Source of the DNA: Convolutriloba macropyga
Lineage: Eukaryota
DNA length: 64,000 nucleotides
Reading direction: 5' to 3'
Assembly: GCF_964194025.1 (NCBI RefSeq)
Contig: NC_134478.1
Coordinates: 6,820,001-6,884,000 of the forward strand
A program made the translations under genes and the position numbers. Below the pieces are notes generated by a model. That model did no database searches. It was not told the origin of the DNA and worked only from the letters and a program-made list of their open reading frames with translations. Of this stretch, positions 12,820 to 62,668 are shown one piece after another; position 1 is the stretch's first letter, and each line of letters starts with the position of its first letter.

Positions 12820-14570
12820 AGCGATATGAAGGGGGTAGGATTGGGATGGCTGGATGTTCAAATCGCCAGGTTGAGGAGGGTTGACGGAGTGTTGGCGGGG
12901 GGGGGGATTGACCGAGAGGGTCAATTTTAAGATTAAGAACAGCCCTTCACATCATGAAATTGTCTCCTCAAAATAGTGTTGTTGAGTTGCATATTTTGAT
13001 ACAAGTAAGGCTCTAAGAGAACCCTCCGAGCTTCACCTATTTATGTCGCTTTAGATGACAAAAATGGTAAAAGGGTCAGACGCAAATTCGGACGACACTA
13101 AACCGAATAAAAGTAAGTTTTCAGACAAATGAGCAAATGTGATTGCGAATTAGGTCAAAATGCTGAAAATACTCAAAATAGGAAATTTGTGTGCAAATTT
13201 TTGATGTCAAGTTTTTTTTTTAAAAATCTTTCAAAATTTATCGAATAAAAGCTAGAACAATTAATACAACTCAGGATTTGAAAAATGAAAACTAAGAACA
13301 AAATTTAGAAAACCAAACAAAAATCATCAAAAAAATTGAAACGCGATTGCATTCCAGCGAAAATAGAAACCTGCAAATGTCGACTACTGACTCAGGACAT
13401 GGTTTACTAAAATTAAGTAACCTAACCGACTATAGTCAAGCGAACTGCTATCAAACAACTGGCCAGCCTTTGGCTTCATCAGTAGCTAACTGCGTCTTAT
13501 GGAGGCTAGCTTTAGCTTCATGGAGTGTGGAAGGGGGTGAGAATGGATAAGTGTAATCAGTGCGTATGCAGTAGACGATAAGTGTTACTGGTGGAAAGAG
13601 ATAGTAGGGTTTGATTGGGGGGACGAAGTGGGAGAGGGGGCCCTTCAGACCATCAATATGAGCCTCCTAAACAGTCCCAGTGAATCACATACTTTAGTAA
13701 GCCTTAAACCTCTAAGAGACCTTAATGCCCAACGGTCTTTACCAATTTATGGCGTTTTTGAGGACGAAAAGCCAAATGGTCAACCGAAAAGTCGGTGTTG
13801 CAAAAAATTGCATTACGTAATATGGCCAGTAGAACACCGGAAACGATCAGAAGTCTTGCAATATAATGTCTGAACTAACCGCGCCAGAATCAGCATTATC
13901 AAAGAAAAACAAAACGGTGTTCACAATAAAACTACAGAGTGTTTTAAAAAATGCAGACACAATTTTTAGTTCAGGGTTGTTGGTAGGTGTGGGGGATTGG
14001 GGGAGGATTTGATGTGGGCGTGGAGGGTAGGGAGCCAGGGTAGGGGGTGCCGTCTGCAGCTTGGAGAGGGAGCAAAGGAGGGATTGTTATGGGACAATTT
14101 CTCAAAATGACCCTTTGCGACTTGAATATTACCAGTATACTAGTAATTAAGCTATTGTTAAAAAAATGTGTGGAAACAGAAGTCATAGATCTTAAATAAA
14201 ATTTAGTGCTCGAAAACAAAAATCGAAGTTCAAGTCATGAACAACCTTGCTACAGTTCAAAAAATCTCGAGATTACCAATGCTCGTCGGGCGAATTGCTT
14301 TCAAAGGACGCGTGAGCTTGGCTTTGCTAGGAGCCAGCTGGGATGCCAGCATTAGGGGGTGGGAGGACTGGGAGGGGGTGCAAGCATTTGGCCCTTCACA
14401 CCCTGAAAATGTCTCCCCAAAATAGATTTGGTGAATCGCCTTCTTAGAGTATAGTAAGGCGTAAGGCTCTAAAAGAACTTAACGCCCTCCGCGCTTTACC
14501 TGTTTACGCCATTTTTGAGAACCAGAAGTTAAGAGGGTCAGACGCACAGTCGGTCAGCGAAAAATTGAAT
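12820..14570. repeat. Cluster of ~4 degenerate copies of the G-rich interior of family H2
   Basis: Recurrent G-runs followed by GGCTCTAAGAGA..TACCTGTTTA..GGGTCAGACG..TCGG, also seen at 32.7-33.0, 39.05-39.35 and 53.0-53.3 kb. Confidence 0.55.
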
Positions 14571-15357
14571 CAATATTGTTGATTAAATCCATGTACAAAT
14601 ACAAGCCTTAAAAGAGACCGCATGCCGTGGCCTTCAAGATTTTTCACTTAGTTCCACGCTTTCAAGCAGCTGATCTAGAGTGTGATCCAGAAAATATTAG
14701 AAGAGATGTGAGACTAGCAAAATAGTTGTTAATTGATCCAATTTATAACAGAATAAATGCGCGAAACAAGATCAAACAATTTCAACATTACTTTTCACCA
14801 TCCATTTTTATAACGAATCATTATTGTTTGTTTCGAGTGACGATCAAGTTGATAGCTCCTTAAATCAATTGTCCATTCGAAGCAGTTGTTTCATTTTCTC
14901 CCGAAATAAGAATAAACAGTAAGTGAGATCCTTTCAAAATTCTTAAAATTGAACATTTGCAAGATCCTTCCAATAATGAAAAAACGCAGCAAAAAAGACC
15001 TTCTGGTCCCAATATAATGCTCTTCAACGTAGCTATCGAGACTGTATAAATGCCTTTAGCAAGTCTATGAAGGGTAAAATTGGAATTGTTTCGTTTCCAG
15101 CGATAGAAAATGATATATATTTGATAATTGGTCACCCTGATTGTAAAGATAAGTCCCGCTTTTTACCATCAAAGCACGAGAAAAAAAACACCGCAAAACA
15201 GTACCTATGCGACTTATTAAGATATAAAAGAGCGTCTATTCAGAGCGCAGGAAGGTTAGTCATTGACGTACGAAGTCACAGTTTTATCATGAAAATGAAA
15301 CAGGAGAAAAATGAAACAATTGCATCACAATACTAAATGTGGCCAAAGATAATCTGA

Positions 15358-16605: not shown

Positions 16606-16975
16606 CTGCAAATTCAAAGATAGAAAATAAAACATGAGAAAATACGAAACGATTAGAAATCCTCGAAACGAAATTAAACCGCAGCCGGATTTGAAAACAA
16701 CTTTTCCAGCAGTTCCAGAAAACCTGTCAAAAGTTTTGCAATGTCAGAAATTACTGAACAACAAAGTGCTTTATCGTGTCAAAAATTTTTAAGACAAATC
16801 TACAACAAACCGGTGATTTACTAAATTACAAATAAAAATTCAGAACCCCCTGCCCATTATATTACCAAAAGTAGGCGATTCAGATAACCATATTATTTCC
16901 AAGCCTTTAATTCAGTCAGAGCTATATACACATAAGCCTTTTACATCCAATTAAAATCTCAGTTTTCCAGAACAA

Positions 16976-19686
16976 TGTTCCGACCCACTTTACTGGGGGG
17001 AGGAACTATATACCCGAATGTTTTTTTGTTCAGTCAATTTTGGCCGATCGTCGAAGGGAGCTGTGAGTTACATCATTAGAAAGCCGGTCCAGCTTAGAAT
17101 ATGGAAATAAAATTTTTTTTCATTTTCGCTTTTTTCAGTGAGTTAACGAGGTTTTAAGTTTTGTGAATAATAGACGGATTTCCGTTGATTTTATTCACAT
17201 TTTCCGGTACTTTTGCCTATATTTTTTGTCAGTTTTGCTTATATGTTAAAATTAAATTAAAAAATTTTGTTGGTTTGTTTTCGAAAGATAGAAGACTGTT
17301 GATGAGCTTTTTCTGATTTTTTGGCTCAAATTGTTGCTTTATATTTCAAAAAACCATTTCAGCCTTTTTTTCAACGAAAATCGCAAGAAATAAGCTTCTT
17401 TAAACACTTTGTTCGAATTTGCCGGAAGTGAACACCAAAAAACTGCTGACACAAAATGCTTCAGCTCAAGATAGGGTTAATTTACTTCTCCGCTTTCTTT
17501 GTAAGGTTTCTACGATTGAAATTTTGCCGGTTTGTAGCTAATATAGCTCAATAATTATACAAACAGCATGACTTTTCTCTGATAATTGAATTTTTTTGTC
17601 AAACTATTGATATCCCATACACTGGGGCCAATGCATGTCCCTAATGAACGAAGTATTAGCAGAGCTGGTTTTGGTCTAATCGTTGAATTCTAAAAGCAGA
17701 AAATAATCCGGATTAACAAGAAACTATTGACTTTTTATGTTCATTACAGAGCAGAACATTTCACATCTAGTTTCACTATGGACGGGTCCAATTGGTTTTA
17801 TAAACAATTGCCAGGTAATATTTTTACTTTTTTAGTAGAAAGCTTATTGTCGTTTGACTTTTAAAATCATTTGTTTTAAAAATAAACAATGGATTATAGA
17901 GCTGCCACATTTATCCCTTATTTTGTTCAACTTATAACTTAGTTTCAATAGAAAGAATGCATCTTCTACTTAATTAAATTTTAGTCTATTGCGGCTTTGA
18001 ACTACTAGTTTCGCAAATAATTAGAAATTCTGGACATTTGCCCATTTTCAGGTCCTTTTTTCTGGTTTTGTCACATTATCAAAATGCTGATAGGTTATTT
18101 ATCACTTTATTGGTGTTCAAAAAATAGACACAAGTGAAAAATTAAATTTTAAAGGAATGGTTATAGTTTTGACGGCTCCGACACCGTTTTCTAGAACTTG
18201 AAGGCACTTTTTCTTTGTCTTAACTGCTTTTTTTCTTATAGGCGTATGAGGCTACTTTTATAGGCGTATGAGGAACTTTTTCTTATAGGCGTATGAGGCT
18301 TTTTTCTCATAGGCGTATGAGGAACAAATGAGCCGATTTACTTATTTTAGTTGTTAGCTGATGGTTTTCATATTTTTTCAAGAAATGTAAGATTTTTTAA
18401 AAAATTTTCCATCTTCTGTTCCTTTTGTCTATTTCTCACCTAGCCTCAATAACAATGTCACATACTACACTTTGGGATTTTGGGGTCAAGTTGGAGATTT
18501 TAGTGAAATAATCATGGCTTTAATAGCTTCGACAACGGTTTTTCTAGAAATTATATTATTTGATTTTTGTTTGTATTGAAGTTCTTTAAACGTATGAAAA
18601 CTCTATTAACTACTGGTCATATATCACCTTTTTGTCATCAAAGGAACGCGCAATTGAATAAAGTTCGTTTCTAAATGAATTGATGGTCGATGGTCTGAAC
18701 GGATTCAACGCCGGTTTTTTCCAAAATAATTATTTTTCGATTTTTGACTGTTTGATGTTCTTTTTGTTAACGTATGACTTACTGCGAGTAATGACAGGTC
18801 TCAATGGCTTCTGTTGGAGGAATCAAGGAACCTATTTAATGATTTGAATAGCTGATGGTTTTCATGACTAAAAATTGTTTTCAAAACATAAGTATTTCGT
18901 GACTTTGCATCTTGTTCTTTTCTGTCTATTTTCGTCTATCTAATGAATTTCCCGACCTTTAAAATAATTGTTTTCGAAAAAAACAAACGTTGTTTTTAAC
19001 TTTGCTCTTTTATTCCCTGCTTGTTAGTCTCATTAATGAGTGGTTACATATCACTTCATTGGCGTTCAAAAAAACTCGCAATCAAACATTTCTTAATCCT
19101 AGCGCAAAAATTTTGGTCATAACGGGTTCGGCATCGTTTTCTTGCAAAATATTTTTGATTTTTTTTTCTGTATTTGTTGGTTTTTTGAGGTCGTATAAAA
19201 AAAATCGTAATAATGACAGGTCCCAATGTCTTATCTAAAAGAGTTATAGATGATATTAAACATAATGATTTCAGTTCATATCTAATGGTTTTCATTACGT
19301 TTGTTGCCAAGTCTCAATAAGGACTGGTTCTATCTTCTCTATATCTTTTCTAGTGATGAACAATGAACTAGTTATTTTTAGTTTAGGTTTTATCTGACGC
19401 CATTTAGACTTTGCTATTAAGTTTTTCTCTAAATAGAGATCGAGTTTTGTATTTTATTAATGTTGGTTGTTGTTATTTGATTTTGTTTGTCTCGTATTCT
19501 TAATAATGGCAAAGCTCCACGGTCCTCTACAGCGGCATTTTTTAAATTCCACTGAATGACCTGAGTTGGCCGCAATTTTTTAATCACACACCAGACATTT
19601 TCGAAAAACACTCGAATTTTTGATTCTATCCCTTCCTCATTTGGTAGACAATTAAGCTGAAAATGAGGATGAGCGGGGTCGGAACA
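16976..19686 (+). mobile_element. Non-autonomous DNA transposon with TGTTCCGACCC terminal inverted repeats (copy A, in NDUFAB1 intron 1)
   Basis: TGTTCCGACCC at 16976 and GGGGTCGGAACA ending 19686; both ends are homologous, in inverted orientation, to copy B; internal (ATAGGCGTATGAGG)x4 at ~18238-18322. Confidence 0.7.
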
Positions 19687-20325: not shown

Positions 20326-20533
20326 GGTTGTTCAGTTAGCGGTCATATCCCAATCGATACTAGCCCATTGAGCCAATCGAAGAGACTGGAGAAAGCAAAC
20401 TGACATCACATCAACTCAACTCAATTCAGAATCGAGAGGAGGAGTGACAAATAATATCTGATGCTGTAAATCAGCTGAAGTTTCAACTGGATATTTACTA
20501 GGAACGTGGTAATGACACGATTCCCACATCAGG
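20326..20533 (-). ncRNA. Putative box H/ACA RNA (~208 nt), U17/snR30-like architecture, copy A
   Basis: 5' domain closed by CTGATGT/GCATCAG and enclosing two hairpins; H box ATATTA; internal hairpin; 3' hairpin TCAGTTTGC/GCTAACTGA with internal loop; ACA where inter-copy homology ends. Confidence 0.6.
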
Positions 20534-20682
20534 TAAGGAAAATATTTTCAGGAAATTAACTGGTTCACAAGATACATTAGACCAAAATATTTAAGTCAAC
20601 CGATCAATTTCACAAGTTACTTTACATGGAACATGCTAATGAACTAACTCCAATATGAACCTTTTTAAGCTTCAACCTACGC

Positions 20683-20810
20683 ATTCAGTTGACGGTCATA
20701 TCCCAATCGCCATCAGCTGATTGAGATTATGATAGTGATGGGGGCAATTCAAACTATCACATCAACTCAGCTCAATCCAAAGGAAAGCACAGGAGTGAAA
20801 ATTGATACGA
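20683..20810 (-). pseudogene. Degenerate 3'-half copy of the H/ACA-like RNA (ACA lost)
   Basis: CAGTTGACGGTCATATCCCAATCG..ATCACATCAACTCAGCTCAAT..GGAGTGA homologous to copy A. Confidence 0.45.
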
Positions 20811-23691
20811 AATTCTGGTTGTTTTCTAGGAAGGTAGAGGGAAACTACTATGAATCAAGTTTCCGCCCATTTATCTGTAATTCGATCTGGAAATTGCATT
20901 GAGAGCGGAAAGCTTAAATATATGACTCGTTACTTAGTAATTCGAAACAGATTTATTTTGTTAACTTTAAAAAGCCTCAGGGGCCAAACAACAATCTAAA
21001 GCTCTCTGGGCACTCACGAAAGACAAAATGTCACGCCCCTATTTCGTCCCTCATAGTTACGTGATTATTTTCCTTTAAATATCCATAAATAAGTGCTTTG
21101 ATCTAGTTCATATTCAGATAGATCTCAAGGCCATATATAGCTAGTATTTACATCTAGGCCTGTAACCCCTAATTTGTTTATGTTTATGAAAAACAACCGC
21201 AGATTGACAGTTCACTGATAAACATGATAAACATATCAAGTGCCTAAAAGCCTCAATATTTACTTTTTTGAGTTTCCTGAAGATAAATTCGCATAATTAG
21301 TAAATAACTTCATGAGAGATTATGTACTTGGTGAAGTAATTATTCTGATAAAGTAGGTGCTAATACGGAACTTGTATATGTACTTAAAAAACATCAAGAG
21401 ACGTACAAAAGCCGGAAATCGCCCAACTTGTAGATCAGTAAATATTTGCGAAGGACCAATACAACTCAAGGTACAGCCCTGCGGAACCTACGATCACCAG
21501 AACACTGGAGAACCAGCCTACAATCAGTTGATTTACACCTTTAAAAACTTGATATAACTTGAGAACTTCTTGCTAATAATTATTGATTAATTCGAGTTGA
21601 AATAATTAAAGATTGAACTGGAAAATCTTTATAAATTACTAAGTCAAATCAGGCTTCCTAAGAGCACAGCTTTGAACAAACAAAACTTCGAAATACAAGG
21701 CAAACTAGTGGATATATCGCACATCCGAACCGCTCAATAAAAGGCTATCACTAGCTAACTTTATTCAAAATAAATCCGCTAAAAACCGCACTGTGAAACA
21801 TCAAAATAAGTCCTTGTAAAATGACAATTATTCACATTATTTACTGCTAATATTAACCTCTGAAAACACCAAGAGGAACACTCTTAAAATCAGTGCGTAA
21901 CACAAAAGTTAAGGTGATAGCATACAAAACAAAACCATACAACAATCTTCCAAGATCTATATTGTCGAGAATCGTCGGCAACACGATATTTATACACTGT
22001 TACAATGCTTCTGATAACAACACTCAAAACAATCAACGCAGCTTCTTCGAAGTTCGAGAAATTTCAAAAATTTAACTAAAAGACAAAATCATGGTTTCTG
22101 TGCAATTATAACAGTGACAATTACTTAAAAACATGTCGAAAACCTTACCATCAAGACAGCTTAAGAGCATGGCTGCCTCTAAAAATCTGTGAGATTGGCA
22201 AATAACATACAGAACAAAAGCATCAAATTCTTTCGTATAAAAGACTTCAAACAAGATTTTTCCGAATATATTTAAAAATACAGCCCGCAGATTGCCTGAA
22301 AATAGATGCGATAGACCATGACCAACAAAATACCAATCAAAAGAATAATACCTAAAAAAACTTTATTTTGTAACGACTTGTAATGTCTTTAGCTGATTTA
22401 GACTTAAGTGCCGTAAAGCTGCACTCGAATAACCTTCAATTAAAAAAGATGACTTAAAGTTAGAGTGACGTCATTTGGTCGTAACAAAAATATTGACTAC
22501 AAAATAAACATAGCACGACACGTCCTGACCTACAATTCAGAAAATTTTGATTAAACAAAAAACTAGACCTACAAATGACTAACTACAAACGGGCGCGCTC
22601 ACAAAACTAATTAGAAAACATTTCGACCTAAAAATTGAAAAAAATCCCGTCAAATTAACACATGCATATTAAACCACTAGTGATAAACAAACATTTGTTC
22701 AAACACCATTTTTTAACAAAACTTTGGAGTAAAAAAAATGACGACGCACAACTACTTGCTTTTTTGCTCCACTTCTTGTTTGGCGTGATCAAAATCACAA
22801 CTACAATTTCAAAAACTTACAAAAATCAGCGCCCCAATGCAGTTCAAAATCTTTGAGTTGTAAAAACAAAGAGGGCAATACCTCCCGCTCTTCTATCGTT
22901 ATCGCAGCTATTTATATAGACGGTGTAAGCACAATTTGAAATATTTTAATAAAATTCCAGTTTATTGATTAGAACGCGCAAGAAAGTAACTTAATTGGCC
23001 AAATTGTCACTCCGTCACAAAAAAAAACGTGGGCCCTCAACAACAGCTCAAATCTACTTTCTTGGATTTGCATTCTATGCTGGTAGCAAGAAACTAAAAG
23101 ATAAAATAAAACGAGGCAATCCGCGCTGTCCAATAATACAAGATTTCCGCCAACTTTTGAGCGGGCGAAAAAACAGCCGCTAATTAAATCATATAGATAC
23201 TCCCATCCGCAAAGATCGGGCTGGAATAAAGAAAAATGGAATAAGAAAAAAGAAATATTGGGCTTTGAACAAAAAATTCAATTCAAATGAAGAGCAAAAA
23301 CGCATATGAGTTCGACAGCTGACCTTTTCCAAGAATTTACAAATAATTTTCAGTAATCTTCCAAGCTCATGTTAATTTAATCTAAGGTCAGCAGAAGCCC
23401 GCTCTTATATCTTCACACAGCTAGTTCCGTACTCTAATTATCAATCCCAAAAAAGTGGAATTGATAATTAGTCAGCATCAAATTCCTCATTACTCAACTC
23501 GCTTCGTTTAGCTCTGAGTCGCGAAACGAAGAACAATATCAACTGTTTATATTTTGAAGAATTGTACGAATTGAGAATTTAAATGGATATATAAAACAAA
23601 CAATTACAAATTATCAGAAAGTCAGCTGCTGAAATACAAGGATTATGGCAATGACAATTGTCACAAAAAAGTAGGAAAATAAATTCACAAT

Positions 23692-23900
23692 GAATGTTCA
23701 GTTCACGGTCATATCCCAATCGATACAAGCCCATTGCGCCAATCGAAGAGACTGGAGAAAGCAAACTGACATCACATCAACTCAACTCAATTCAGAACAG
23801 AGAAGAGGAGTGAAGATTGCTATCTGATGCTGTAAATCAGCTGAACAATGTCAACTGTATATTTACTAGGAATGTGGTAATGGCACGATTTCTACATCAT
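23692..23900 (-). ncRNA. Putative box H/ACA RNA, copy C
   Basis: H box ATAGCA; 9-bp basal stem TCAGTTTGC/GTGAACTGA; ACA-TTC end; same fold as copy A. Confidence 0.6.
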
Positions 23901-23984
23901 ATTCAGGCGTTAAAAACATAAATAGCAGCCTAACCTTGTATTGACTATTTTTTTTCACTTCCAAAATGTGACCAATTGTCACTT

Positions 23985-24555
23985 GTAAAAATAAAACATA
24001 GCAGGACAAGTCCTGACGTACAATTCAAAGAATTTTCATTGACTAAACAGAAAATCTAGACCTAGAATGGGCTACGAGTGAATTCAGAAAACCATTTTAA
24101 AAAAATCAGAACAAAAAAATAAGAAAAAAAACAAAATCAATATCAAAATGCCGCATGTGAGCAAAAAAAACCCTAGCGAGAAATGAAATTTTAATTCAAA
24201 CAAAAAACTAGGCCTAGAATGAGCTGTGAATGGATTGGGAAAACCATTTACAAAAAAAATCCGATCCAAAAAATCGAAAAAACAGTAAAAATCAGAGTGA
24301 AATTGCCGCATGTGAACAAAAAACCACTACCGAGAAACCGAATTTTTGTTCAAACACCGTTTTCTCACTCTACTTTAAAATTAGAGCGACAAAAATTCAC
24401 GCCGCAAAACCACTTGCTTTTTCGCTCCACTTCCTGTTTCGGCGTGACCAAAATCACTACTCCAATTTGACTTCAAAAATCATGAAAATGTGTGAACAGA
24501 TCTTAAAAAAAAAAGACAGCGCCCCAATACAATTCAAATTCTTTGAATTGTAATA
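23985..24555. repeat. Dispersed repeat (H1 interior), similar to 35955-36470 and more weakly to 22480-22870
   Basis: Shared CAGGACAAGTCCTGACGTACAATTCAAAG..CGGCGTGACCAAAA..CAGCGCCCCAATAC blocks. Confidence 0.7.
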
Positions 24556-24942
24556 AATGGCAACCAAATTGTCATTAAACATTAAGCACACAGTACGAAA
24601 AAAATGAACAAATCAGTTTGCCATTCCACAATAAAAAATCAAGGGTATATAGAAAAAGACAAGTTAATTCCTCCAAAGAGAGTATTTGCACGACAGTTAT
24701 CAGATTCTCCAATACGAACTTGATATCATGTAGTCGAAAATGAGGGAAGACACAGACAGCACAAAACATTCGGAAGAAAATTGAACACTTAGCAATAGTT
24801 TTTTACAATCGCAGGGTGCCCAGTTAAACTCACGGTCAAATTTTGACCCGAAATCATTTTGAACTAAAAACAAATATCAGTCAAACCTCGTATTGAATAC
24901 AAATATCAACAAGGCGGCTCGGTAATGTGCAATGGCACATAA

Positions 24943-27900
24943 GGTTCCGACCCCGCCCATCCACAATTTTGGCATAATTGTCTACCAAATGAGGAACAGA
25001 TAGAAAAACCCAAAAATTATTTTTTGCGAATCCCAAAAAAGACCAAGTCTTTTTCAAAAAATTCTGTATGAACGATAAGATAACCTCCAAAACAAATAAC
25101 TCAGTGGAGTAAAAATTGATGCATTAGATTGCTGTAATATGTCAATATTAAGAAAGCGAGTCAAAACGAACAGCAAAATCAAACAACATCAACAAACATT
25201 AATTACATCAAAAAATTTATGTCCCTCTTAAAAACTAAATTTAATAACAAAGTCAACATACCGTCAAATAAACCTGAAACTAAACAAAAATAACTTATAA
25301 ATCACCAGAAAACATATGCGACCAGTCCATAAAAAGGTTTGGTAACAATTATACAAGAAAGAAAAACAGAAAAGTAAAAAAAATTAACTTATTTTTTTGA
25401 AACAATTAACTTCAAAGTAATAAATACCATTAGGAATAAATTAATATTACCACAAATTTGCGATTACCACTGCTTCTATAGAAGGGCATTAGGACCTGAC
25501 CTTATTCATTTTTTAGAGCGGCTAAAAAGAACAACAAAGAACAAACAAAATTTCAATTGAAACTTGCCAAAAAACGCTGTCAAAACCGTCAAGCCAAATT
25601 TTGGCACTCAAAATATATTTGATTGCGCCTTCTTCAAACAGCTATAATGTAGTACGTGGCCATTCATTAGTAAGACTAGGTAACAAGTAGACAAAAAAGC
25701 GAAGTGCTAAAGTATGTAATACTTTAAATTTTTTTTTCGAAACAAAATTACATTCAATGTCATGAAAGGCATTAATTACAAAAGAGCTATTTAAATATCG
25801 TCGTTTTTTCATGAAAAGGAAACCCTCGAGACCTGTAATTATCAAGAATATTTCTTGCATCTACAAAAAGAACGTCAAATATGACAAAAATCAAATTAAT
25901 TTATTTTTTTTTGTGAAAAAGCTGTGTCGAAGCCAGTAAGGTCATAAAATCTTTAAAAAAAAAGATTTTGGGACACCAATCCCTTTTATTCCCTTGACAC
26001 CCATAATTTCTTCTTTGACCTGTAATCAACTAACGAGATTAGGTAACAAAAAGAAACAAAAAAAGAACAAAATTGCGAAGTTAAAAAAGTTTTTTTTTTT
26101 AATTTTGGAAAACGATGGATTTGAAAGTCATAAAAGCGATCAGCTATCTGCTAATATCAGAATATCGGTTTTTCTATTCTTCCATGAAAAGCCAATGAAA
26201 GCTATCACTATACAGGAAATTTCATACGACCGAAACGACAAAGTATAAATGACAGTTAAGACAAAATTAAAAAATTCAATTGATTTCTTCAAGAAAGAGG
26301 CGTCGAGGCCATTAAAACGATGATTTATATCTTTCAGGATTTTAATATGTTCAATTGTGCTTTAATTTGAATGCCAATAAGGTGACATGAGAACTGTAAA
26401 TAATTTGATAATGTGACAAAATTAGAAAACGTGAAAAACTGGCAAATATCAAAACAAACAAAAATCTAAAATCTTGTAGTATCAAAGCCAGAAAACAATA
26501 ATTTCAGGCTTAAAACTGCAACCGAGAATAAATGTTAACTCAGTAGAAAGAAGAAGCAGTCTTTTTTTGCTGACACTAAGCTGGAAGTTGAACAAATTAA
26601 GAAAATAGAGGAAAAGTTAATTAAGCCATTATTTATTGAAAAGTCAATTATTTTTAATAAAGAAACGACCATAAACTTTCAATTAAAAAACTAAATGCAT
26701 TAGCCTGGAGCTGTTTAGCAAGCGAATTGGTTGGACCTATCACTCCTGAGCTTTGATTTGATATGTTCTGTTCTTTATTATTTAAAAAAAAAGTCTTTTT
26801 TTTTTAAAAAAAGACCGACTGATTACAACCCGATTTTTTTTGGATTGTAACAGTCCAAGAATGGCCCAAAACTACCCCTGTTAATACTTATTGTCCGTTA
26901 AGAACAATTGATTTTTCGAATGTTGTAGATATAGATAATTTCTGAGTTGAAACTCAAAATAAATTTTGCATTTTTGATAATCAACGAGTAATCAAAGAGC
27001 GGCTAAAAAGAACAACAAAGAACAAACAAAATTTCAATTGAAACTTGCCAAAAAACGCTGTCAAAACCGTCAAGCCAAATTTTGGCACTCAAAATATATT
27101 TGATTGCGCCTTCTTCAAACAGCTATAATGTAGTACGTGGCCATTCATTAGTAAGACTAGGTAACAAGTAGACAAAAAAGCGAAGTGCTAAAGTATGTAA
27201 TACTTTAAATTTTTTTTTCGAAACAAAATTACATTCAATGTCATGAAAGGCATTAATTACAAAAGAGCTATTTAAATATCGTCGTTTTTTCATGAAAAGG
27301 AAACCCTCGAGACCTGTAATTATCAAGAATATTTCTTGCATCTACAAAAAGAACGTCAAATATGACAAAAATCAAATTAATTTATTTTTTTTTGTGAAAA
27401 AGCTGTGTCGAAGCCAGTAAGGTCATAAAATCTTTTAAAAAAAAGATTTTGGGACACCAATCCCTTTTATTCCCTTGACACCCATAATTTCTTCTTTGAC
27501 CTGTAATCAACTAACGAGATTAGGTAACAAAAAGAAACAAAAAAAGAACAAAATTGCGAAGTTAAAAAAGTTTTTTTTTTAATTTTGGAAAACGATGGGT
27601 TTGAAAGTCATAAAAGCGATCAGCTATCTGCTAATATCAGAATATCGGTTTTTCTATTCTTCCATGAAAAGCCAATGAAAGCTATCACTATACAGGAAAT
27701 TTCATACGACCGAAACGACAAAGTATAAATGACAGTTAAGACAAAATTAAAAAATTCAATTGATTTCTTCAAGAAAGAGGCGTCGAGGCCATTAAAACGA
27801 TGATTTATATCTTTCAGGATTTTAATATGTTCAATTGTGCTTTAATTTGAATGCCAATAAGGTGACATGAGAACTGTAAATAATTTGATAATGTGACAAA

Positions 27901-29054
27901 ATTAGAAAACGTGAAAAACTGGCAAATATCAAAACAAACAAAAATCTAAAATCTTGTAGTATCAAAGCCAGAAAACAATAATTTCAGGCTTAAAACTGCA
28001 ACCGAGAATAAATGTTAACTCAGTAGAAAGAAGAAGCAGTCTTTTTTTGCTGACACTAAGCTGGAAGTTGAACAAATTAAGAAAATAGAGGAAAAGTTAA
28101 TTAAGCCATTATTTATTGAAAAGTCAATTATTTTTAATAAAGAAACGACCATAAACTTTCAATTAAAAAACTAAATGCATTAGCCTGGAGCTGTTTAGCA
28201 AGCGAATTGGTTGGACCTATCACTCCTGAGCTTTGATTTGATATGTTCTGTTCTTTATTATTTAAAAAAAAAAGTCTTTTTTTTTTAAAAAAAGACCGAC
28301 TGATTACAACCCGATTTTTTTTGGATTGTAACAGTCCAAGAATGGCCCAAAACTACCCCTGTTAATACTTATTGTCCGTTAAGAACAATTGATTTTTCGA
28401 ATGTTGTAGATATAGATAATTTCTGAGTTGAAACTCAAAATAAATTTTGCATTTTTGATAATCAACGAGTAAAGTTAGCAAAAAACGGCAAAGTTTTAAC
28501 TACAAGGCACTCTCTGCGGACTCTGAAGTAGAAATAGCCCCCCTCTGAGTCTACAAAGATTGTATGAGTGTTGTTTGGGGGTGTACTGTAGGCAAATTTA
28601 ATCAAAGTGGACTAAAGTAGCTTATTTCGTGCTGTTGTTCATGAAAAAGGCTAAATTTTGAAATGTTTATCCAGATTTTTTGACCAAAAAATTAAATCAA
28701 AACAATCAAAAATGCTTGTTCGTCTTCAAAAATAAAATCAACGACACTATTCTTAAAAATTATAACAAATTTTAGCAAAATTGACGAAAATTTAGGCAAA
28801 AATTCCGGAAAATGTGAATAAAAACAACGTGAATTCACTCTTCTTTTCTCAGAAGTTTAAGCCTCGATAACTCCCTGTAGAAAACGAAAATTAAAAAAAT
28901 CTTTTTAATTCCATATTCTACGCTGGACGAGCTTTCTAATGATACCAGTCTCAACTCTCTACGATGAATATATCGAGCGGCGAAAATTCACGGAACAAAA
29001 AAAAAAAAACCCAGTTGAGTATATAGTTCCTCCCCCCTCAAGAGGGTCGGAACA
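24943..29054 (-). mobile_element. Non-autonomous DNA transposon, copy B (inverted relative to copy A), 4-bp ATAA target-site duplication
   Basis: Ends (G)GTTCCGACCCCG and GGGTCGGAACA, both flanked by ATAA; several hundred bp at the right end are the reverse complement of copy A's left end. Confidence 0.7.
25515..28471. repeat. Near-identical 1481-bp tandem duplication inside copy B
   Basis: Units start at 25515 and 26996; identical spurious ORFs at 25642 and 27123 are offset by 1481. Confidence 0.95.
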
Positions 29055-30162
29055 ATAAAATCTCGTACAAAACTCGATAAAATCTCGATTCTGAACATAA
29101 AAACAGTCAGTTCAATCTGTTCGAAATGGTATCACAAGGCATCAAAATCTTTGAGATAAAAACTGCAGTTATTGTTGTTAACGCTAATTCTGATTATCTG
29201 AAACCATTGGTTTCCATTAGCAATAATTTTAATTTGCTAAAATAGAAAACAAACGAACGATTTTAGTACACAAAGGATGGTGTTTACAACTTCGTTCATT
29301 TTCGATTTGAACTTAGTTAAATACCCAAAACTAATTTTAGCTACCTAGAAAATTGAATGAAAAACCAAAATCCCCGATTAAAAAAATGAGTACAGCTTAA
29401 AATTTCAAGCCATGGATTCAAGGAAAAATTTAAAAATTCAAGCCAATTAAAACTGATTATCCATTTCAGCAACCAAACTAATTGGTTGTTCTAGAAAAAC
29501 AATAGTAGAAGGAATACTGCCAATAAAAAACCACTATAAATTGCGGACATGGCTGAAACCATCTAAAGACAGAAAAATAGGCCAAAATTTGACTAAAACA
29601 GCGAATTAAAAAGAAACAAAACAACCCAAAATATTAGAAACAGAAAGCCAAAAGTCATGCAAAATATCTTTGCAATCACAATTTCAAGACTGACAAAACG
29701 GTCTGAAGATTTCTCAAAATAGCAAAATTACAAAAAAGCTAGAAAAAGCCTCTAAATGCCAATATTTTGCTTTTTTTGCCAAAATTTTATAAAACCACTA
29801 TGAAACGCACTAAGCATCATCACGGTATAGCACACAAAACACTTTGACCGGGAAAAGTTGAAATAAAAGCTCGCGGGAACAAAAAATGCCTCTCGCCTAC
29901 AGGCAATTTTATAACATTAAGTTTGCGCACTCAAAAAGCGGAACGAACAAAAAACCACCTCTTTACATTCCTCTAACACAATGCCCATTGTTTCATAAAA
30001 GCAGTTATTGCAATTTTTCTCTTACTATCAGATTCGGGCTTCAAAAGTTCAATTATTACAAAGACAGTACAACATCCTCAAAATAAAACACCACGAGAAG
30101 ACTACAAATAGCTCGACTCAGCAATCGCATTTATTTCCAGGAAAAATGAATCTTTTTAAATA

Positions 30163-30370
30163 GCGTGTACAGTGTACAGTCATATTCAAGTCGATGCAAG
30201 TTAATTGCGACAATCGAAGAGTCGAGAAAGCAAACTGACGTCACATCAACTTTACTCAATTGCAATGGAGAGATGAGAACTAAAGGCTGATATGTGATGC
30301 TGTTAATCAGTTGAACAATTGCAACTGTTATTTAGGAGCCATGTGGTTATGACACAATTCGTATATCAGT
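30163..30370 (-). pseudogene. Diverged full-length copy D of the H/ACA-like RNA
   Basis: Retains H box ATATCA and terminal ACA but has many stem-breaking substitutions. Confidence 0.45.
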
Positions 30371-30406
30371 TAAATCAACATAGCCCTTTGGTCAAGATTG
30401 CAAATA

Positions 30407-30618
30407 TAGTGTTCAATTCACGGTCATATCCCAATCGACACAAGCTCAATGAGCCAATCGAAGAGACCGGAGAAAGCAAACTAACATCACATCAACTCAA
30501 CTCAATTCACAAGAACAGCGAAGAGGAGTGAAGATTGCTATCTGATGCTGTAAATCAGCTGAACAATGTCAACTGTATATTTACTAGGAATGTGGTAATG
30601 GCACGATTCCTACATCAT
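30407..30618 (-). ncRNA. Putative box H/ACA RNA, copy E
   Basis: H box ATAGCA; basal stem TTAGTTTGC/GTGAATTGA preserved by G-U pairs; ACA-CTA end; shares ~70 bp of flank with copy C. Confidence 0.55.
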
Positions 30619-30686
30619 ATTCAGGCGTCAAAAACATAAATAGCAGCCTAACCCTGTATTCTTTTTTTCACCTGCAACATGTGACC

Positions 30687-30798
30687 AATTCAGAAGAGAG
30701 AAGAGGAGTGAAAATGATATCTGGTGCTGTAAATCAGCCGATAAATGCAAGCTGCTTATTTACCGTGAATGCGGTAATGACACAACTCCCACATCAGG
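30687..30798 (-). pseudogene. 5'-half copy F of the H/ACA-like RNA
   Basis: CTGATGTGGG..GCACCAG-ATATCA present; 3' hairpin missing. Confidence 0.45.
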
Positions 30799-31146: not shown

Positions 31147-31505
31147 TCACTTATTCTTTCCGCTTTGAGATCCAGATTTCTTTCCTTTCTTTCCACCCTT
31201 TTTCTTCAGCGCCTTCTTGGCTTTATAAGCGCGCCAGAATCTCTGAATAGCAAGCGCAGCTTTAGTGGCAGTTCGCACATTCTTTTCCTCTTGCTCTTTC
31301 TTTTCCTTGCTCACACGCCTCTCTTCCATGATTGTGTCATACTCCTGCTGAAGTGTCGCAAACTTTTCTTCTAGAACGTTCAATTCCTGTTTTTCCTGCG
31401 TGTACTGCGCGTCAATTTCTTCAAATTCTTGCTGTTTTTCGCCCATGTGAGAGTCATATTGGACTATCCAATTTTCAACTTCTGTTTCAGTTTGGAACTT
31501 CTTGC
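31147..31505 (-). CDS. IQCD: Dynein regulatory complex protein 10 (IQCD), exon 4
   Basis: TTTCAG acceptor; KKFQTETEVENWIVQYDSHMGEKQ.., IQ motif AIQRFWRAYKAKK, and K/G-rich tail typical of DRC10. Confidence 0.9.
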
Positions 31506-42122: not shown

Positions 42123-42764
42123 CTATCGTGGCGAAGGTGCTTGTGGAAATGAAGTGAAAACATCCCTAGGCGACAAAATATTCTCAGAGAAATCCCTAGT
42201 CCATGTAATATTTCCTTCATTGTCATTGGCCACAAATTTATTATACTCTCCCGAAAGTGAAATAGCCACTACCGATTTATCATCCAGGGTACTGAATGCA
42301 CTCAGCACTGGTAAACCTCCGGATTTAAGCTCAATTCGTCCACAGCTGGTTCTGGCTTGTCCGAGGCGCTTCGAAATGCTTCCAGTCCTCCCGTGACGTC
42401 CACTGGAACTTGAGGGCGTCGAGTTCTTCAAATTGAAAACATGCAGGGTTCCACGATCGCTGGACACGCAAACTAAATTTCCGGGTTGGTTGAAATTGAT
42501 CGAGTAAATCAAAGCGGGCTGTGTGCCTCGTCTAAACTCTTCAACCTGTGCTTTATAATGAGTGTTGAAAATGCGAATTAATGTACCCTTTTCAGATGCT
42601 GTAGCAACTAAGTCGCCTTTTTTGCTGAGCGAAATACAAAAAAGGTTGCCTTCATGAGCTGAGATATATTCGGCGGGCATTCCGCTGCCCAAAGAAGCAA
42701 CTGCGAGTTGTCCTATTTTGGGTCCAGGATAGACCATGATTGGGTTCGCTTCCATCGCGCACAC
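42123..42764 (-). CDS. WDR45B: WD-repeat phosphoinositide-interacting protein (WIPI3-like), exon 3
   Basis: ISAHEG..ATASEKGTLIRIF..EEFRRG..IYSINFN..VSSDRGTLHVF; ATTTAG acceptor. Confidence 0.85.
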   Translation of the reverse strand: MCAMEANPIMVYPGPKIGQLAVASLGSGMPAEYISAHEGNLFCISLSKKGDLVATASEKGTLIRIFNTHYKAQVEEFRRGTQPALIYSINFNQPGNLVCVSSDRGTLHVFNLKNSTPSSSSGRHGRTGSISKRLGQARTSCGRIELKSGGLPVLSAFSTLDDKSVVAISLSGEYNKFVANDNEGNITWTRDFSENILSPRDVFTSFPQAPSPR

Positions 42765-53297: not shown

Positions 53298-53635
53298 AAA
53301 ACTGTTAAAATAGTTGAACGATTTCAAACATATATATATATATATATATTTTCAAAAAAAATTTCAAACTTTTTAAAATGGAACTTATGAAAATTTCTGT
53401 ATTTCGAATACTTTAGATTAAAATGTTCTTCCGGTAAGAAAATCCTTAAGAAAACCACTACTCCTCTTCGAGTCGTAAAAAAGACCGATTGAAAAGGCGT
53501 AATAACCGAGGCGTAATCACCAACACGTTTACCATAATTGCTTCAAATTTCGTTCGATCAAATTACTAAAATTCAATTTGAGGTGAAACTTTCCTGATCA
53601 TTAATACAAAACTAAAATGCGTAGCTACAACTTAC

Positions 53636-53868
53636 GGAGCATAGACCGTGTGGATTAAGGCACGATTCGTATCTCTCTTGCTCCAGAGGGTTCATGTCAA
53701 ACGTGAAAACTTTTATTAACGACTCCAACACTACCACAATTCGGTCTTTTCTCAGCTTCACATTCTTTACTTGGCTGGAAAAGTCCATCTCAAATAACTC
53801 CGACTGAGTTGCTCCATTCCAGATAATCACTTTGTTTACTGGATATCGAGCGGGAACTCCGCCACCCA
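53636..53868 (-). CDS. WDR45B: WIPI3-like, exon 2
   Basis: VGGGVPARYPVNKVIIW..VKNVKLRKDRIVVVL..IKVFTF..NPHGLC; TTACAG acceptor and GTAAGT donor. Confidence 0.88.
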
Positions 53869-54377
53869 CTGTAAAAACATTAAATCTGCTTGCTAATCAC
53901 TTCAATATGATGGGTCTTTTAACGTCTTTGCCCCAAGCTTAGTGGGTGCAATTTTTTGCAAACACAGAACAAGAGCTATATCAACACGATTGCTCGCAAT
54001 GACAGATATTTAATAATCGGGGCGATTTACCGATGACAAATGGAAGAGTTACTAAAGTAAACCAAAGCGCCCTTCCAAAACATGACTGAATAAAACTAGA
54101 GCTCTCGGTTTTTCAGCAGGACGACGTTTCAAATGGACATTTAAAACTAGTATATGATAAACCTCAATATGCGGTCATAATTATGTCCTAGTTGACGACG
54201 CGATGTGCGAACCTTGACCCGTTGTTCTGGGATTTTATCTCACAGCGCGTCAGGGCACGACATCGGAACGTGGACTGCAATTTTTGTTTACATTTCGCTA
54301 TTTCTAGTCAATATCGATGCTTATGGATGGCATAGTCAAAATAGCAATATTTAGGGAGGGAGGGTTAACTATGGGGT

Positions 54378-55683
54378 ACTACACCCTCCATGGACGGGGT
54401 TCTGGAGAAAGTGGAGGAGCAGCTTGGCCGAGTCATACCAAACATCGTCGGCAAAGAAATAATCCAAGAGGAAAGACAACTTTTTTCTCTCCCTCTCAGA
54501 ATGGGTGGGCTTAACATCGCCCTCCCACAAGATCTTCATAAAATACTTGAGCAATCAATTGAACTCTCAAGTCCATTGGCGTCATTCAAAAATGATTCAT
54601 TCGAAATTCAACAATGTGAATTAGAACAAACCAAGATCAGTCTCAGATAGAAAGCAGACATGCAACGTGAACTCATCTCGAAAAAATCCAGAATCGAAAA
54701 CAATCTACCAAAAATGAAGTATACCATCCAGCTGGCCTCAGAGAAAAGAGCATTCAGCTGGCTTAACGCGCTTCCGTTATCAAAATATGGTTTTGACCTC
54801 ACGAAGACTGAGTTCCGTGATGGAATAGCACTTCGATACACCTGGGAAGCGAACACGCCAGCCATATGCCCATGCAGTAAAGAATTTAGCCTCACCCATG
54901 CCCTACATTGCGCCAAAGGCGGGTATACGCATCTATAACACAACGAAATCAGAGACGTGTTTGCAAACCTGATTGATGACGTTTGCCACGATGTCTAGAT
55001 AGAGCCAAAATTTCAGTCGCTCGATGGAGAAATTTTCTCGAGTAATTCCACCACTACTGATGATTGCGCTCGCCTGGACATCAAGGCAAACGGTCTGTGG
55101 GATCTCGCTTTAATCGCCCTTGCTTCGATGTGAAGATTTTCAACCCTCACGCGAAGAGCTGCCATAAGACCATTAAAGATGCACACATATCACAAGAGCA
55201 TCAAGCGAAATAAGTACGAAGAGCGAATCCGCGAAACCCAACACAGCAGCTTCAAAGCACTGGTTTTTGCTTGCTCGGGCGGTACTGGGCCATCAGCATC
55301 GCGCGTTATGAAATAACTCGCAACCAAGATCAGCGAAAAACGCGGAGAGCCGTACGCCGACACTATAAGCTACATCCGAACGTTACGTATAAGCTACATC
55401 AGGTTCGCACTTCTGAGGAGCTAGGTTCTGTGCTTGAGGGGATGTCGCGCCCTCAAGCCTCGTGTTCTCAGTGAGACTTCGATTAGCGCCGTCGTGTAGG
55501 TGTTTTCCTCTCAACTTGCTAGTTATTTTTGTGACTGGGCCGTCTTTACAGTGTCTGGAGGGGAACAGTTTGGAGTGCAGCATCCGGCTAAGTGCTACTC
55601 ATCATCCCTTATTTTCCGACCTACATCCATCGTTGCCGGATGGTGTACACGGTCCTTTTTTTATTGTTAGAAGATATGAAGAA
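54378..55683 (+). mobile_element. 5'-truncated CRE-clade (RLE-type) non-LTR retrotransposon, copy 1
   Basis: LPLRMGGLNI, SWLNALP..FRDGIALRY, CPCS..HALHC zinc knuckle, HNEIRD, RLDIKANGLW; flanked by the 14-bp duplication GTTAACTATGGGGT. Confidence 0.8.
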
Positions 55684-55699
55684 GTTAACTATGGGGTGC

Positions 55700-58600
55700 G
55701 GGCTTTTCACGGTTGCGGGCTTAACACGGTTGAGGGCTTTTCACGGTTGCGGCGTCTACGTCCCGAAAGCACCCCAACTCAGATGGGCCAACGGCAACCA
55801 ACCTCTCTCCGAAAGGGGAGGCCAAAGCTTCGGGATGGGGTGTTTTTGACTCCGAGGGGTGCTGGACCGGCCACCACTCCTCGTAAACAAGTCAGAATCA
55901 TCGTCCGGATGCTGTTGATCAAGGGTGGGATCGAACGCAACCCAGGTCCCCAAAGGCCGTGCACGATCTGTACGAAGGAAGCCCTGCACTCCTGCATCCA
56001 ATGTGTAGTGTGCGAGAGATGGACACATTTCACCTGCGCCAAGCTGGATGGAAATAGACTGCCGTACACATGGAGCTGCAGGAGTTGTACAGAAAAGGAA
56101 AACTGTGACACGAACCTTCGGATTACGCAATTCAATTTCAATGGGCTACGGAACAAGATCGAAGAATGCGTCCTGTACATGGAAAAAGTGGGATGAAGAT
56201 AGGGCTTTCTAGGAGACCTTTCTTAAGCCTAACAGCAATCTGAAAGTCCCAAACTATTCAATCATCCGCAAAGACAGGTCAAAGGACAAAGGCGGAGGGA
56301 TTGCAATCATCATCCACAACTCCATCACATACAGCAATGTGTTGGTATAGTGCGATGACGAATTCACTGAGGCACAAGGCATCAAATTCAAGTTTGGCAA
56401 CGAGATTACATTGTTCAACATCGACATCCCGCCTGCATCCAGCTGTGCAAAGGCGTTCCAACCCAATCTGGAGCCTTTCATGGTAGAAGATTCTATCATT
56501 TGCGGTGATCTGAATGGCCACAGCAAGCAATGGCACTCAGCCATAGGGGAAGACCAAAGAGGCGCCATACTCACCCAGCAAATCGATGCGGCTAGCATGG
56601 TCGTCTTGAACGAGAACGCACCCACGAGAGTTCCGTCACAAGGAAGATGCAGCTCACCGCACGTCACCAACGCTCACCCCAACCTTGCCATGAGCACAGA
56701 ATGGTCAGTGGACACTGCTCTTAGCTCAGACCATAATCCCATCGTCAGAGTGTTGCTTGAATCGAAGAGGAGCACAACGGAGAGGCGAACCTGTTAATGT
56801 TAATTTCCTCAAAGCGGACTGGCTGGCCCTCAAGGATTTTGTTGAAGATCGCATCCCTATCCTCCCGGTTGGCGATGTGCCAACTAGCCCTCAGGAAACT
56901 GCTACAAGCGGCAGCCAGAAAGCACATCCCAAAGGAAGGATTCCGTCTATTCTCCCTGGCTTCCCCACTGAAGCCGAGAAACTGACGAGGCAAAGAGACG
57001 ATCTCAGGAGAACCAACCCCTCGAACCCCAGAGTTACCGAGCTGAATCAAGAAATCCAGAAGAAGGTCCAGAAACACCGACAGGATAAATGGATTCAACA
57101 CCTCGAGGAATGCGACCTGCGGAAAGGCTGCAAAAAGCTCTGGCAAACCATCAAAGGTTTGAGCGGCAAAGCAGTCAATATCAGAAATGTGGCAATTAAG
57201 TTAAGTTGATCGAACCATATATGGAGCAACTGAATGTGCCAACAAGTTCAGCCAGATGTATTTCCCCACGTGCAAGGATCCAAAAGAGAAGTGACATCGG
57301 GCCCTCATGCGGAAGATGAAGAATGCCCACTCAGAAGAGGATCTCCTGGTCCCGCAAGAAGTGGAGGCAGCGATTAAGAAAACCAGAAGCTCTAAAGCTC
57401 TGGGCCCCGACAAGCCTGCACCATTGATGCTCAAGAAGCTTGGAACGAACGCAACGGCATATATCACAGATGTTTAATAGGAGCATCAAGCACTCGGTGA
57501 TACCGGGCATATGGAAGTGCTCCCGCGTATTTCCCCTGCTAAAACCCGAAAAGCCAGCAGATCAGGCGAAAAGCTATCGACCCGTGTCTCTGCTCTCACC
57601 CCTCATCAAGCTGCTAGAGACTTCCATGGTGCCGTTTGTCCTCGAAAGCTTCAGCCATGCAGAACATCAACATGGCTTTCGCAGGGGCCAATTCAACACC
57701 ACCACTGCTCTTTGCGAGATAGATGATCACATAAGAACAGGCCTCAACAGAAGGAAACCCGCCCACAGAACCATTATGGTGGCGTCGACCTTCGCGCCGC
57801 TTCCGATACGGTTAATATTAACAAGCTCATCGAAAGAATTGAGAACCTGAAACTGCATGTGAAAATCAAGAGATGGCTCAAGAACTACCTTCATGGAAGG
57901 CAAGCAAAAGTCGAGTTCCGGAACAGCGTGTCAAAAGAAAGGACAATCAGCAGCGGCGTGCCTCAAGGAGGTGTTCTATTTCCTTGCTTATTCAACATCT
58001 ATATGGCAACTGCTCCGACCCCTCCAGAAGACGTGAAGCTGGTAAGCTATGCCGACGATTGCACAGTTCTTTCCTCAGGACCAGTTATCTCCGAAATAGA
58101 GACGAAGACCAACAGTTATCTTGCAGTGCTCCTAAAATGGTTCGAGGAAAACAGCTTTGAACTTTCTCCTGGCAAATCATCGGCGACATTATTCACCACT
58201 TTCAGCAACGAATCAAGTAGAACGCTCAAAAAATATAGGTGGAAGGCAACAGGATACCAACAGAACAACACTCAAAAGTATTAGAAGTCACCTTTGACCC
58301 GATGTACCGATTTGGTGCCCATGCGAAAACCGTAGTGGATAGAGTAGCGAAGAGAAACAACGTCCTCTGTGCCCTAGCCGGGAGCTCAAGGGGGAAGGAT
58401 AAAGAGTTGCTACTCACTACGTACAAAGCTACAGGGAGAGCCATCATCAACTACGCGGCTCCCGTTTGGTCCCCTGGTCTGGCCGATTCGCACTGGTAGA
58501 AAATCCAGAGACGCCAGAACTCTGCCCTGAGAAGCGCCACTGGCTGCACGCGGATGACAATGGAAGACGATCCTCAGAACGAGTTGAAGATTGCCATGTA

Positions 58601-59212
58601 GATTGCCAGGGGTCGGAGCAGTTGCCATGTAGATGTTGCCGTGCGAGACCACTGCCAGCTTCTATCAGCACAACATCTCTTGGCTTCACAGTCGACACAC
58701 CATCCAAACCATGGAATCAAGGACTCAGTCAGCGAAAGAGACATGCGGAAGACCCTGACAGAAGAATTCGGTAGCGATGTTGAAAGTGCCACGGAAAGAA
58801 GCCACCCAAAATGGCTGACGCGAGGCAACATCATACTTCACAGCAAGTTCGTCAGGAAATCCATCTCAAAAATGTGCAACAACAAGGTTCTGAATGTCCC
58901 GTCACCCCTCATTTCCGAGTCGGAGAAGAAGCTTCCCAGGAGTACGAGAGTCAAGCTCGCCCAACTACGAAGTGGCTATAGCAAGTTACTGAATTCGTAC
59001 ATGTCAAGAATCGACCCCGAAGTGCGTGACGTCTGCCCAGATTGCCAAGAGAGCCCACATGACATGAAAAATCTATTCGAGCGCAAGAAGAAACCCACCC
59101 ACCTCACGATCCACAACTTATGGTTGATGCCTGTCGAGGTCGCGTCCTTCCTCGGGCTTTAAAGGCATACCTACTGACGCCGAAGTAGACCCCGGACGGC
59201 TACAACAACAAC
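55700..59212 (+). mobile_element. Full-length decayed APE-RT non-LTR retrotransposon (2A-like peptide, PHD finger, AP endonuclease, RT, C-terminal Cys motif; (CAA)n tail)
   Basis: 21-bp TSD AAGAAGTTAACTATGGGGTGC (55679-55699 and 59213-59233); IERNPGP; C4HC3-type PHD; QFNFNG, QET, GDLNGH, SDH; YRPVSLL, QHGFR, PQGGVL, YADD; LAQLRSG..CPDC; several frameshifts and stops. Confidence 0.92.
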
Positions 59213-59926: not shown

Positions 59927-60113
59927 CGAGAGCTAAGTGACTGCACCGGAAAAGCATTTCAGCACAACCAATGCCACCGTCTTTCCATGTGATTCTCTGC
60001 TTCTCCCTCAAAGGATCAGTATTATATATAATAAAGCCGGATGATGTCCCGCAAACAAAACACCCGCCATCCTGGTTGAATCTCATTGATAATATTGAAC
60101 ATATTTCAGTCAT
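59927..60113 (-). CDS. WDR45B: WIPI3-like, exon 1
   Basis: FNQDGGCFVCG..GFIIYNTDPLREK..GGIGCAEMLFRCSHLAL; phase-1 GTTAGT donor fits exon 2. Confidence 0.88.
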
Positions 60114-62385: not shown

Positions 62386-62668
62386 ACCGATGTGCTTACA
62401 TCTTTTAATGCCCCCCAAGTGGGCTTACATCTTTTATGACCCCCAGGGTAGTCGGTCAACTTGGGAGCGTCAAGTCAACTCCTATATCTAACTATCTTCA
62501 AATCCTGACAGTAATCAAAACCAAAAATCATCAAAAGAGAAGACGAGAGTGACATGAGTAAAGGTGTGAGAGACTTGCACTGTCAATGGACTCTTGACAA
62601 TGCCTCAATCAACCTCCGGGAAACTAACGGTCTTATTACCACTATTGCCGTTAGTTAACAGGACAGCT

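Follow-up and report, generated by a model that had tools for sequence, protein, structure and literature searches.

A tandem-amplified candidate box H/ACA-class small RNA gene family downstream of DRC10 in acoels

The sequence analysed here, referred to as the window, is a stretch of 64,000 nucleotides (nt) from the genome of the acoel Convolutriloba macropyga (NCBI RefSeq assembly GCF_964194025.1, contig NC_134478.1, positions 6,820,001 to 6,884,000 of the forward strand). Coordinates are counted from its first letter unless another locus is named. Read along the minus strand, the window carries WIPI (60.1–42.1 kb), DRC10/IQCD (from about 41.3 kb to the exon with the IQ motif) and, just downstream of the latter, a 10.5-kb cluster of a short repeated element that is the subject of this study. 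The WIPI (PROPPIN) exon at 42132–42764 (minus strand) is 81% identical to the Symsagittifera roscoffensis protein, and DRC10_N is annotated on the upstream exon of DRC10/IQCD in the same gene order. The last exon of DRC10/IQCD, an open reading frame (ORF) at 31147–31446 (minus strand) that contains the IQ motif, is conserved in S. roscoffensis and in a third acoel; its stop codon lies 351 nt from the element cluster, on the same strand. From its sequence, the element is probably a box H/ACA-class small RNA gene of about 190–205 nt, specific to a lineage of acoels and amplified in tandem at a conserved site downstream of DRC10.

We searched the 64-kb window for copies using blastn with one copy and nhmmer with a profile built from four copies. 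Both searches find exactly six, as originally predicted. These lie between 20.3 and 30.8 kb, each on the minus strand, and the rest of the window is free of copies; only four of the six are full length. These are copies A (20329–20532), C (23695–23900), D (30166–30368) and E (30410–30617), of which copy C serves as the reference for anatomy. Copies A and E are 90–94% identical to C. Copy D, with 78% identity to C and several pairs broken, is either a divergent paralogue or a decaying copy. The two remaining copies are pseudogenes: copy F (30686–30796, minus strand) consists of the 5' half alone and ends after AAUUG inside the internal hairpin, while copy B (20684–20807, minus strand) is a diverged 3' part without H box and without ACA. 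A 24-nt core pattern occurs four times in the window against an expectation of 0.00.

Self-comparison of the region from 18 to 33 kb shows that homology between solitary copies is limited to the unit of about 205 nt and is sharp at both ends; additional upstream sequence, about 78 nt, is common to C and E only. Two further elements of the original prediction can be read directly from the copies. Homology ends at an ACA triplet in A, C, D and E, copy B having AAU at that site, and a box of the form ANANNA with variable N positions is kept in five of the six copies, as AUAUUA in A, as AUAGCA in C and E and as AUAUCA in D and F; B has lost it.

The window was also compared with two C. macropyga contigs taken from a different assembly. 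One is the window itself (99.995% identity) and the other is a haplotig of about 95–97% identity, which carries nine full and two partial copies in tandem units of about 260 bp. At this second haplotig (L005 10649–18045, corresponding to window 20329–30796), blocks of E-type units spaced at about 260 bp are each ended by a D-type unit. The nine full copies show that copy number at the locus is polymorphic.

For a second species, we used the syntenic S. roscoffensis locus (L001, from GCA_963678635.1). The profile yields 84 nhmmer matches at this locus, of which 77 are full length; without exception they lie on the gene-sense strand, and their modal spacing is 223 bp. The spacer between units is only about 34 nt. 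About 68 copies make up almost all of a 15.7-kb intron between WIPI exons 2 and 3 (L001 13063–28746); in C. macropyga these two exons are fused, without an intron at that place (window 53633–53869). A homogeneous array of 13 copies begins about 240 nt after DRC10. The S. roscoffensis arrays also show a higher-order periodicity, with identical units every 893 bp.

When the window is aligned with this locus by blastn, the coding exons (74–82% identity) and the element are the only alignable parts, introns and intergenic DNA being unalignable. The consensus sequences of the element in the two species are identical at 83.5% of aligned positions (157/188). Conservation at the level of exons, at a syntenic site, argues for purifying selection and against a neutral satellite or transposon. 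The third acoel is more distant (WIPI identity 72%); in it, an ARM-repeat gene directly follows DRC10 and no element is found in 20 kb. Two exact-pattern scans of Joint Genome Institute metagenome contigs for the conserved core returned no match, and no protein homologues were obtained for an ORF that spans the S. roscoffensis unit in antisense.

The secondary structure was predicted with RNAalifold from four copies and, without guidance, from 15 representatives of both species. In both runs two hairpins are enclosed by a closing stem, the H box and the ACA are unpaired, and a small internal hairpin and a 3' hairpin lie between these boxes. This reproduces the layout that had been proposed from the window alone, in which a branched 5' domain is followed by the H box, the internal hairpin, the 3' hairpin and ACA. 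In copy C, all on the minus strand, the 5' domain (23824–23900) is folded by a closing stem of 6–7 bp (UGAUGU/GCAUCA) around the two hairpins. This arrangement is a three-way junction without guide pocket, and its helices 1–4 are paired in 77–91%. Directly 3' of the closing stem stands the H box AUAGCA (23818–23823), of the form ANANNA. It is followed by the internal hairpin (23772–23813), UCACUCCUC.../...GAGUUGAUGUGA, whose helix 5 is paired in 88% in the alignment of both species and which in S. roscoffensis is 21 nt shorter, with the loop UCCU. The 3' hairpin (23699–23768) has a lower stem of 8 bp, CAGUUUGC/GUGAACUG, and an internal loop with a 5' strand of 8 nt, UUUCUCCA, and a 3' strand of 6 nt, AUGACC. 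Above this loop there is a two-part upper stem and then an apical 5-bp stem with the loop AAU. The ACA box (23695–23697) lies one base after the lower stem, at the point where homology between copies stops. Overall, the element measures about 205 nt in C. macropyga and about 190 nt in S. roscoffensis. The stem variants quoted in the original prediction are correct, and both C-to-U changes in copy E yield wobble pairs.

Conservation of boxes and pairing was assessed on an alignment of 66 distinct full copies from both species. The three fixed positions of the H box are A in 63/66, 66/66 and 66/66 copies, and the N positions vary (AUAGCA, AUAUUA, AUACCA, AAACCA, AAAGCA). The ACA columns are also nearly invariant, with A, C and A in 64/66, 66/66 and 64/66 copies. 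Paired columns of the predicted fold form pairs in 85.7% of 3926 cells, compared to 29–44% when partners are slid by 1–3 columns. Differences between the two species consensus sequences fall on 14/120 paired versus 17/68 unpaired columns (Fisher p=0.024). Among the 11 pairs that changed between species, two are fully compensatory, six are wobble-compatible, one is a pair gained and two are disruptive, at helix ends. The compensatory changes are both in the apical stem (C-G to U-A and U-A to C-G). The fold contains 7–10 G.U pairs and therefore works better on the gene-sense strand, where 59/60 and 58/60 pairs are formed versus 53/60 and 49/60 on the antisense strand.

Because the element combines conservation across species, near-invariant H/ACA boxes, substitutions that preserve pairing and strand-specific G.U pairs, its interpretation as a structured H/ACA-class RNA gene family appears well supported at the level of sequence. 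In this respect the original prediction, a structured and locally amplified H/ACA-type RNA gene, holds. Of the two readings that it offered, a new H/ACA family or a diverged U17/snR30 homologue, the second is not supported, as discussed below.

A number of results weigh against this interpretation. Rfam models were run on the whole window, the 11-kb region around the cluster, single copies of both species and the related loci, at the gathering score and at E<=10. No H/ACA family matches the element in any of these sequences, and the only hits, at the more permissive threshold, are at chance level (snoR113 with E=0.24 in an unrelated 1481-bp repeat, SNORD26 with E=0.32). The consensus structure was derived from the same sequences on which pairing was scored. 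Covariation exceeds that of column shuffles only modestly (21/500), in a control that the relatedness of the copies makes weak, and the fold energy of single sequences is no better than that of shuffled ones (z = -0.44), a measure that is uninformative on both strands. The distance from the pocket top of the 3' hairpin to ACA depends on the register chosen: it is 15 nt in the 5-bp register GUCUC/GGGAU and 17 nt in the 3-bp register of RNAalifold. Within the 3' half of the element, conservation is lowest in the 3' strand of the internal loop, which fits poorly with a conserved ribosomal RNA (rRNA) target. Finally, many copies of the S. roscoffensis intron array carry stem-breaking changes; these units look like decaying ones, and the array largely resembles a decaying satellite.

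The last of these points leads to the alternative that the element is a satellite or tandem repeat without RNA function, either a derivative of an old RNA gene or a sequence with a role at the DNA level, whose apparent structure would reflect dyad symmetry and common ancestry. The head-to-tail arrays of about 223 bp with their 893-bp higher-order period, the different copy numbers of the two haplotigs, the stem-breaking changes in many units and the unexceptional fold energy are all in line with such a repeat. We nevertheless regard it as quite unlikely, since the element is as conserved between species as the coding exons while the surrounding introns and spacers are unalignable, and the homology of solitary copies is bounded sharply at RNA-like ends. 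The H and ACA boxes stay near-invariant around variable N positions, substitutions are biased towards preserving pairs (two of them compensatory), and G.U pairs make the fold strand-specific in arrays that are all oriented as their host genes. A mobile element, namely a solo long terminal repeat, a miniature inverted-repeat transposable element or a short interspersed element, would share the TG start and CA end that the unit shows on either strand, its multiple copies and its sharp boundaries. It is nonetheless scarcely credible here: no target-site duplications flank C, D or E, the only match at copy A being the 3-nt ACC, and terminal inverted repeats are lacking. The copies are tandem rather than dispersed and uniform in orientation, and in both species they form one cluster, located at a syntenic site; outside the arrays, neither the rest of the 64-kb window nor about 85 kb of related loci contains a copy. 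A different kind of small RNA, such as a long box C/D-type RNA, is suggested by UGAUGU near the 5' end, an internal GUGAUGU and CUGA before the 3' end, which resemble C, C' and D boxes, and by a weak, truncated SNORD26 match (E=0.32) on an S. roscoffensis copy. We consider this class very improbable. Every one of them forms half of a stem (CUGAUGU/GCAUCAG; UCAG.../...CUGA), so that both complementary partners are accounted for. Among copies, the 'C box' is highly variable (CGAUGU, UAAUGU, UAUUGU), and all four bases occur at column 208, which corresponds to the G of CUGA. A consistent terminal stem is lacking and the SNORD26 match is not significant.

The remaining alternative is the U17/snR30 reading of the original prediction, according to which the element is an acoel orthologue of U17/snR30 (SNORA73/snR30) whose docking motifs m1 and m2 were rewritten, with their partners rm1 and rm2 in expansion segment 6 (ES6) of 18S rRNA changed to match. 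We judge it unlikely, and U17/snR30 membership of these sequences is not supported by the tests run. The resemblance is one of layout only. The size of 190–205 nt is close to the 203–222 nt of vertebrate U17 (PMC7601244, Table 1), and human U17 (PMC7601244) likewise carries two stems ahead of its H box, lacks a 5' pocket and combines a small internal hairpin with a 3' hairpin that has an internal loop; in both RNAs ACA follows. The pocket-less two-stem 5' domain, the internal hairpin and the length of about 200 nt are thus all present, and the element, like U17/snR30, is multi-copy, on the sense strand of its host genes and partly intronic. At the m1 position, both acoels have the same strand, UUUCUCCAG, and a precedent for an altered m1 with a compensating change in rm1 is reported from Trypanosoma brucei. 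The fast evolution of acoel rRNAs also speaks for this reading.

Set against this, the Infernal check suggested with the original prediction gave no match of the SNORA73/snR30 models at E<=10 in the 11-kb region, in copy C alone or in a single S. roscoffensis copy, even though only about 230 nt were searched for each copy. The motifs m1 (AUAUUCCUA) and m2 (AAACCAU), which occupy opposite strands of the 3' hairpin loop, hardly vary between Tetrahymena and human, C. elegans included (PMC7601244, Table 1), but both are absent from this loop in the two acoels. Its 5' strand is UUUCUCCA in either species, and its 3' strand is AUGACC in the window and GAUUGC in S. roscoffensis. At the m2 position 5/6 bases therefore differ, which means that the 18S rRNA of the two acoels would have to differ too, and this strand varies further among S. 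roscoffensis subfamilies (GGUUGC, GGUGGU, GCUGGC, GAUUGA). The spacing to ACA is also different. In U17/snR30 the distance from the m1/m2 element to ACA is 'invariantly seven' nt (PMC2664660), whereas the loop of the supported fold ends 9 nt before ACA, separated from it by the 8-bp lower stem and one A. The 7 nt counted originally were obtained by including two bases (G-U) of the lower stem in the putative m2; the two extra stem pairs concerned are supported by G-U, G-C or A-U in 60/66 copies and by C-G or U-G in 64/66. Rewriting rm1 should moreover be costly, since rm1 is required for ribosome function (PMC2664660). The tandem arrays, with up to about 68 copies in one intron, likewise depart from the single copy per intron of U17/snR30. 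Should the orthology be true, both docking motifs would have been replaced, with the m2 side unlike even between two related acoel genera and the gene present in dozens of tandem copies, and the essential rm1 and rm2 sites of ES6 would have co-evolved, or the mode of docking changed, in a fast-evolving lineage. In the search for an acoel U17/snR30, the element offers a concrete candidate to test.

Four other classes were considered and rejected. A protein-coding reading is incompatible with the indels of 1, 2 and 3 nt between copies. The element has no template-like repeat as expected of a telomerase RNA, no UGAG in the terminal loop of the 5' or 3' hairpin as expected of a small Cajal body-specific RNA (scaRNA), and no A and B boxes as expected of an RNA polymerase III gene.

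For the H/ACA-class small RNA gene that we favour, we infer expression, processing, protein partners and target along the following lines. The element would be transcribed from the same strand as the flanking genes, and the RNA would most likely be excised from a longer host transcript or intron, because the copies have no common upstream promoter, the spacer is about 34 nt, the arrays are sense to their host genes and one of them is intronic. The mature RNA is predicted to comprise a pocket-less three-way-junction 5' domain, an unpaired H box and a small internal hairpin, together with a 3' hairpin in which the internal loop would lie at about the canonical distance from ACA. Its expected partners, by analogy with other H/ACA RNAs, are dyskerin/Cbf5, Nop10, Nhp2 and Gar1, and the pocket-less 5' domain may serve the assembly of this ribonucleoprotein. 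The loop of the 3' hairpin may act as a pseudouridylation guide, or dock on pre-rRNA or another RNA. The model of the 3' hairpin is compatible with a pseudouridylation guide, and the target of such a guide pocket would read 5'-GGUCAU-UN-UGGAGAAA-3' in C. macropyga or 5'-GCAAUC-UN-UGGAGAAA-3' in S. roscoffensis. The presence of a variable 3' loop strand in a near-identical scaffold points to one of two possibilities: only the 5' strand matters, or targets differ by paralogue or species. A comparison of the loop strands with conserved rRNA and small nuclear RNA segments gave nothing convincing and carries no weight here. Some copies are decaying, namely B and F, perhaps D, and many of those in the S. 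roscoffensis intron array.

With canonical pseudouridylation-guide H/ACA small nucleolar RNAs (snoRNAs), the element shares the order hairpin, H box, hairpin, ACA and the conservation of both boxes. Canonical guides have the top of the pocket 14–16 nt upstream of H or ACA (PMC2664660); in the 3' hairpin of the element this distance is 15 nt in the best-paired register but 17 nt in that of RNAalifold. The element differs from them in being longer, in its three-way-junction 5' domain without pocket, in its extra internal hairpin and in a 3' guide strand that is not the same in the two species. With respect to genomic organisation, tandem or polycistronic snoRNA clusters occur in trypanosomatids, Euglena and plants, whereas animals usually have one snoRNA per intron. 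The units of 223–260 bp, each with one small RNA and a short spacer and arranged head to tail, resemble such tandem snoRNA arrays, and the lack of room for a promoter in each unit implies processing from a long precursor. The differences are that these units are of H/ACA type, in an animal, and partly inside the intron of a protein gene.

If expressed, the element would represent an undescribed, lineage-specific H/ACA-type family, unusual in the three-way junction of its 5' domain, in its additional internal hairpin and in a loop whose 3' strand is the part least conserved between the two species and among paralogues. Acoels would then keep H/ACA-type genes in satellite-like tandem arrays, such as the 15.7-kb intron with its roughly 68 sense copies, which would break the animal pattern of one snoRNA per intron and imply processing of a precursor as in plants or kinetoplastids. 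The case also calls for caution in masking 'satellites' in such genomes.

Two features of the arrays were noted separately. Spacers in S. roscoffensis (e.g. L001 40397–40430) and in the second C. macropyga haplotig (L005 11040–11088) have a similar motif, AAUUUUGU(A/U)CU, at their end, just upstream of the closing stem; no such motif precedes the solitary window copies A and C. It may represent a processing signal or a string resembling an Sm site. In one S. roscoffensis subfamily (L001, e.g. 13818–14012, 14711–14905 and 16944–17138), both loop strands of the 3' hairpin are replaced by trinucleotide runs, (CUA)n as CUACUAC and (GGU)n as GGUGGUGGU, which can pair over 7 bp and so close the loop. 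A chance origin of these complementary runs seems unlikely.

Several other repeats lie within or near the cluster. A tandem duplication of a 1481-bp unit, with 99.7% identity, lies between copies C and D (window 25515–28472), and the snoR113-like match mentioned above, weak and not significant (23.5 bits, E=0.24), occurs in each unit. Upstream of copy C there are A-rich direct repeats of about 155 bp (window 24031–24356) and a diverged local duplication of several hundred bases, with 75–88% identity between 22465–22866 and 23988–24556.

A 534-amino-acid ORF found no record in our searches and is not orthologous to the ARM gene located after DRC10 in the third acoel, and the IQ exon of DRC10/IQCD gave no homologues when used alone as a protein query. 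Elsewhere in the window, two adjacent ORFs at 61345–62418 (minus strand) have a weak reverse-transcriptase (RVT_1) match and are probably a decayed retroelement. The region from 54000 to 60000 stands out by a G+C content of 45–49%, compared to about 35% elsewhere, and by overlapping long ORFs on both strands; it includes a weak PHD-finger match at 55462–56196 (plus strand) and the first WIPI exon at 59928–60107 (minus strand).

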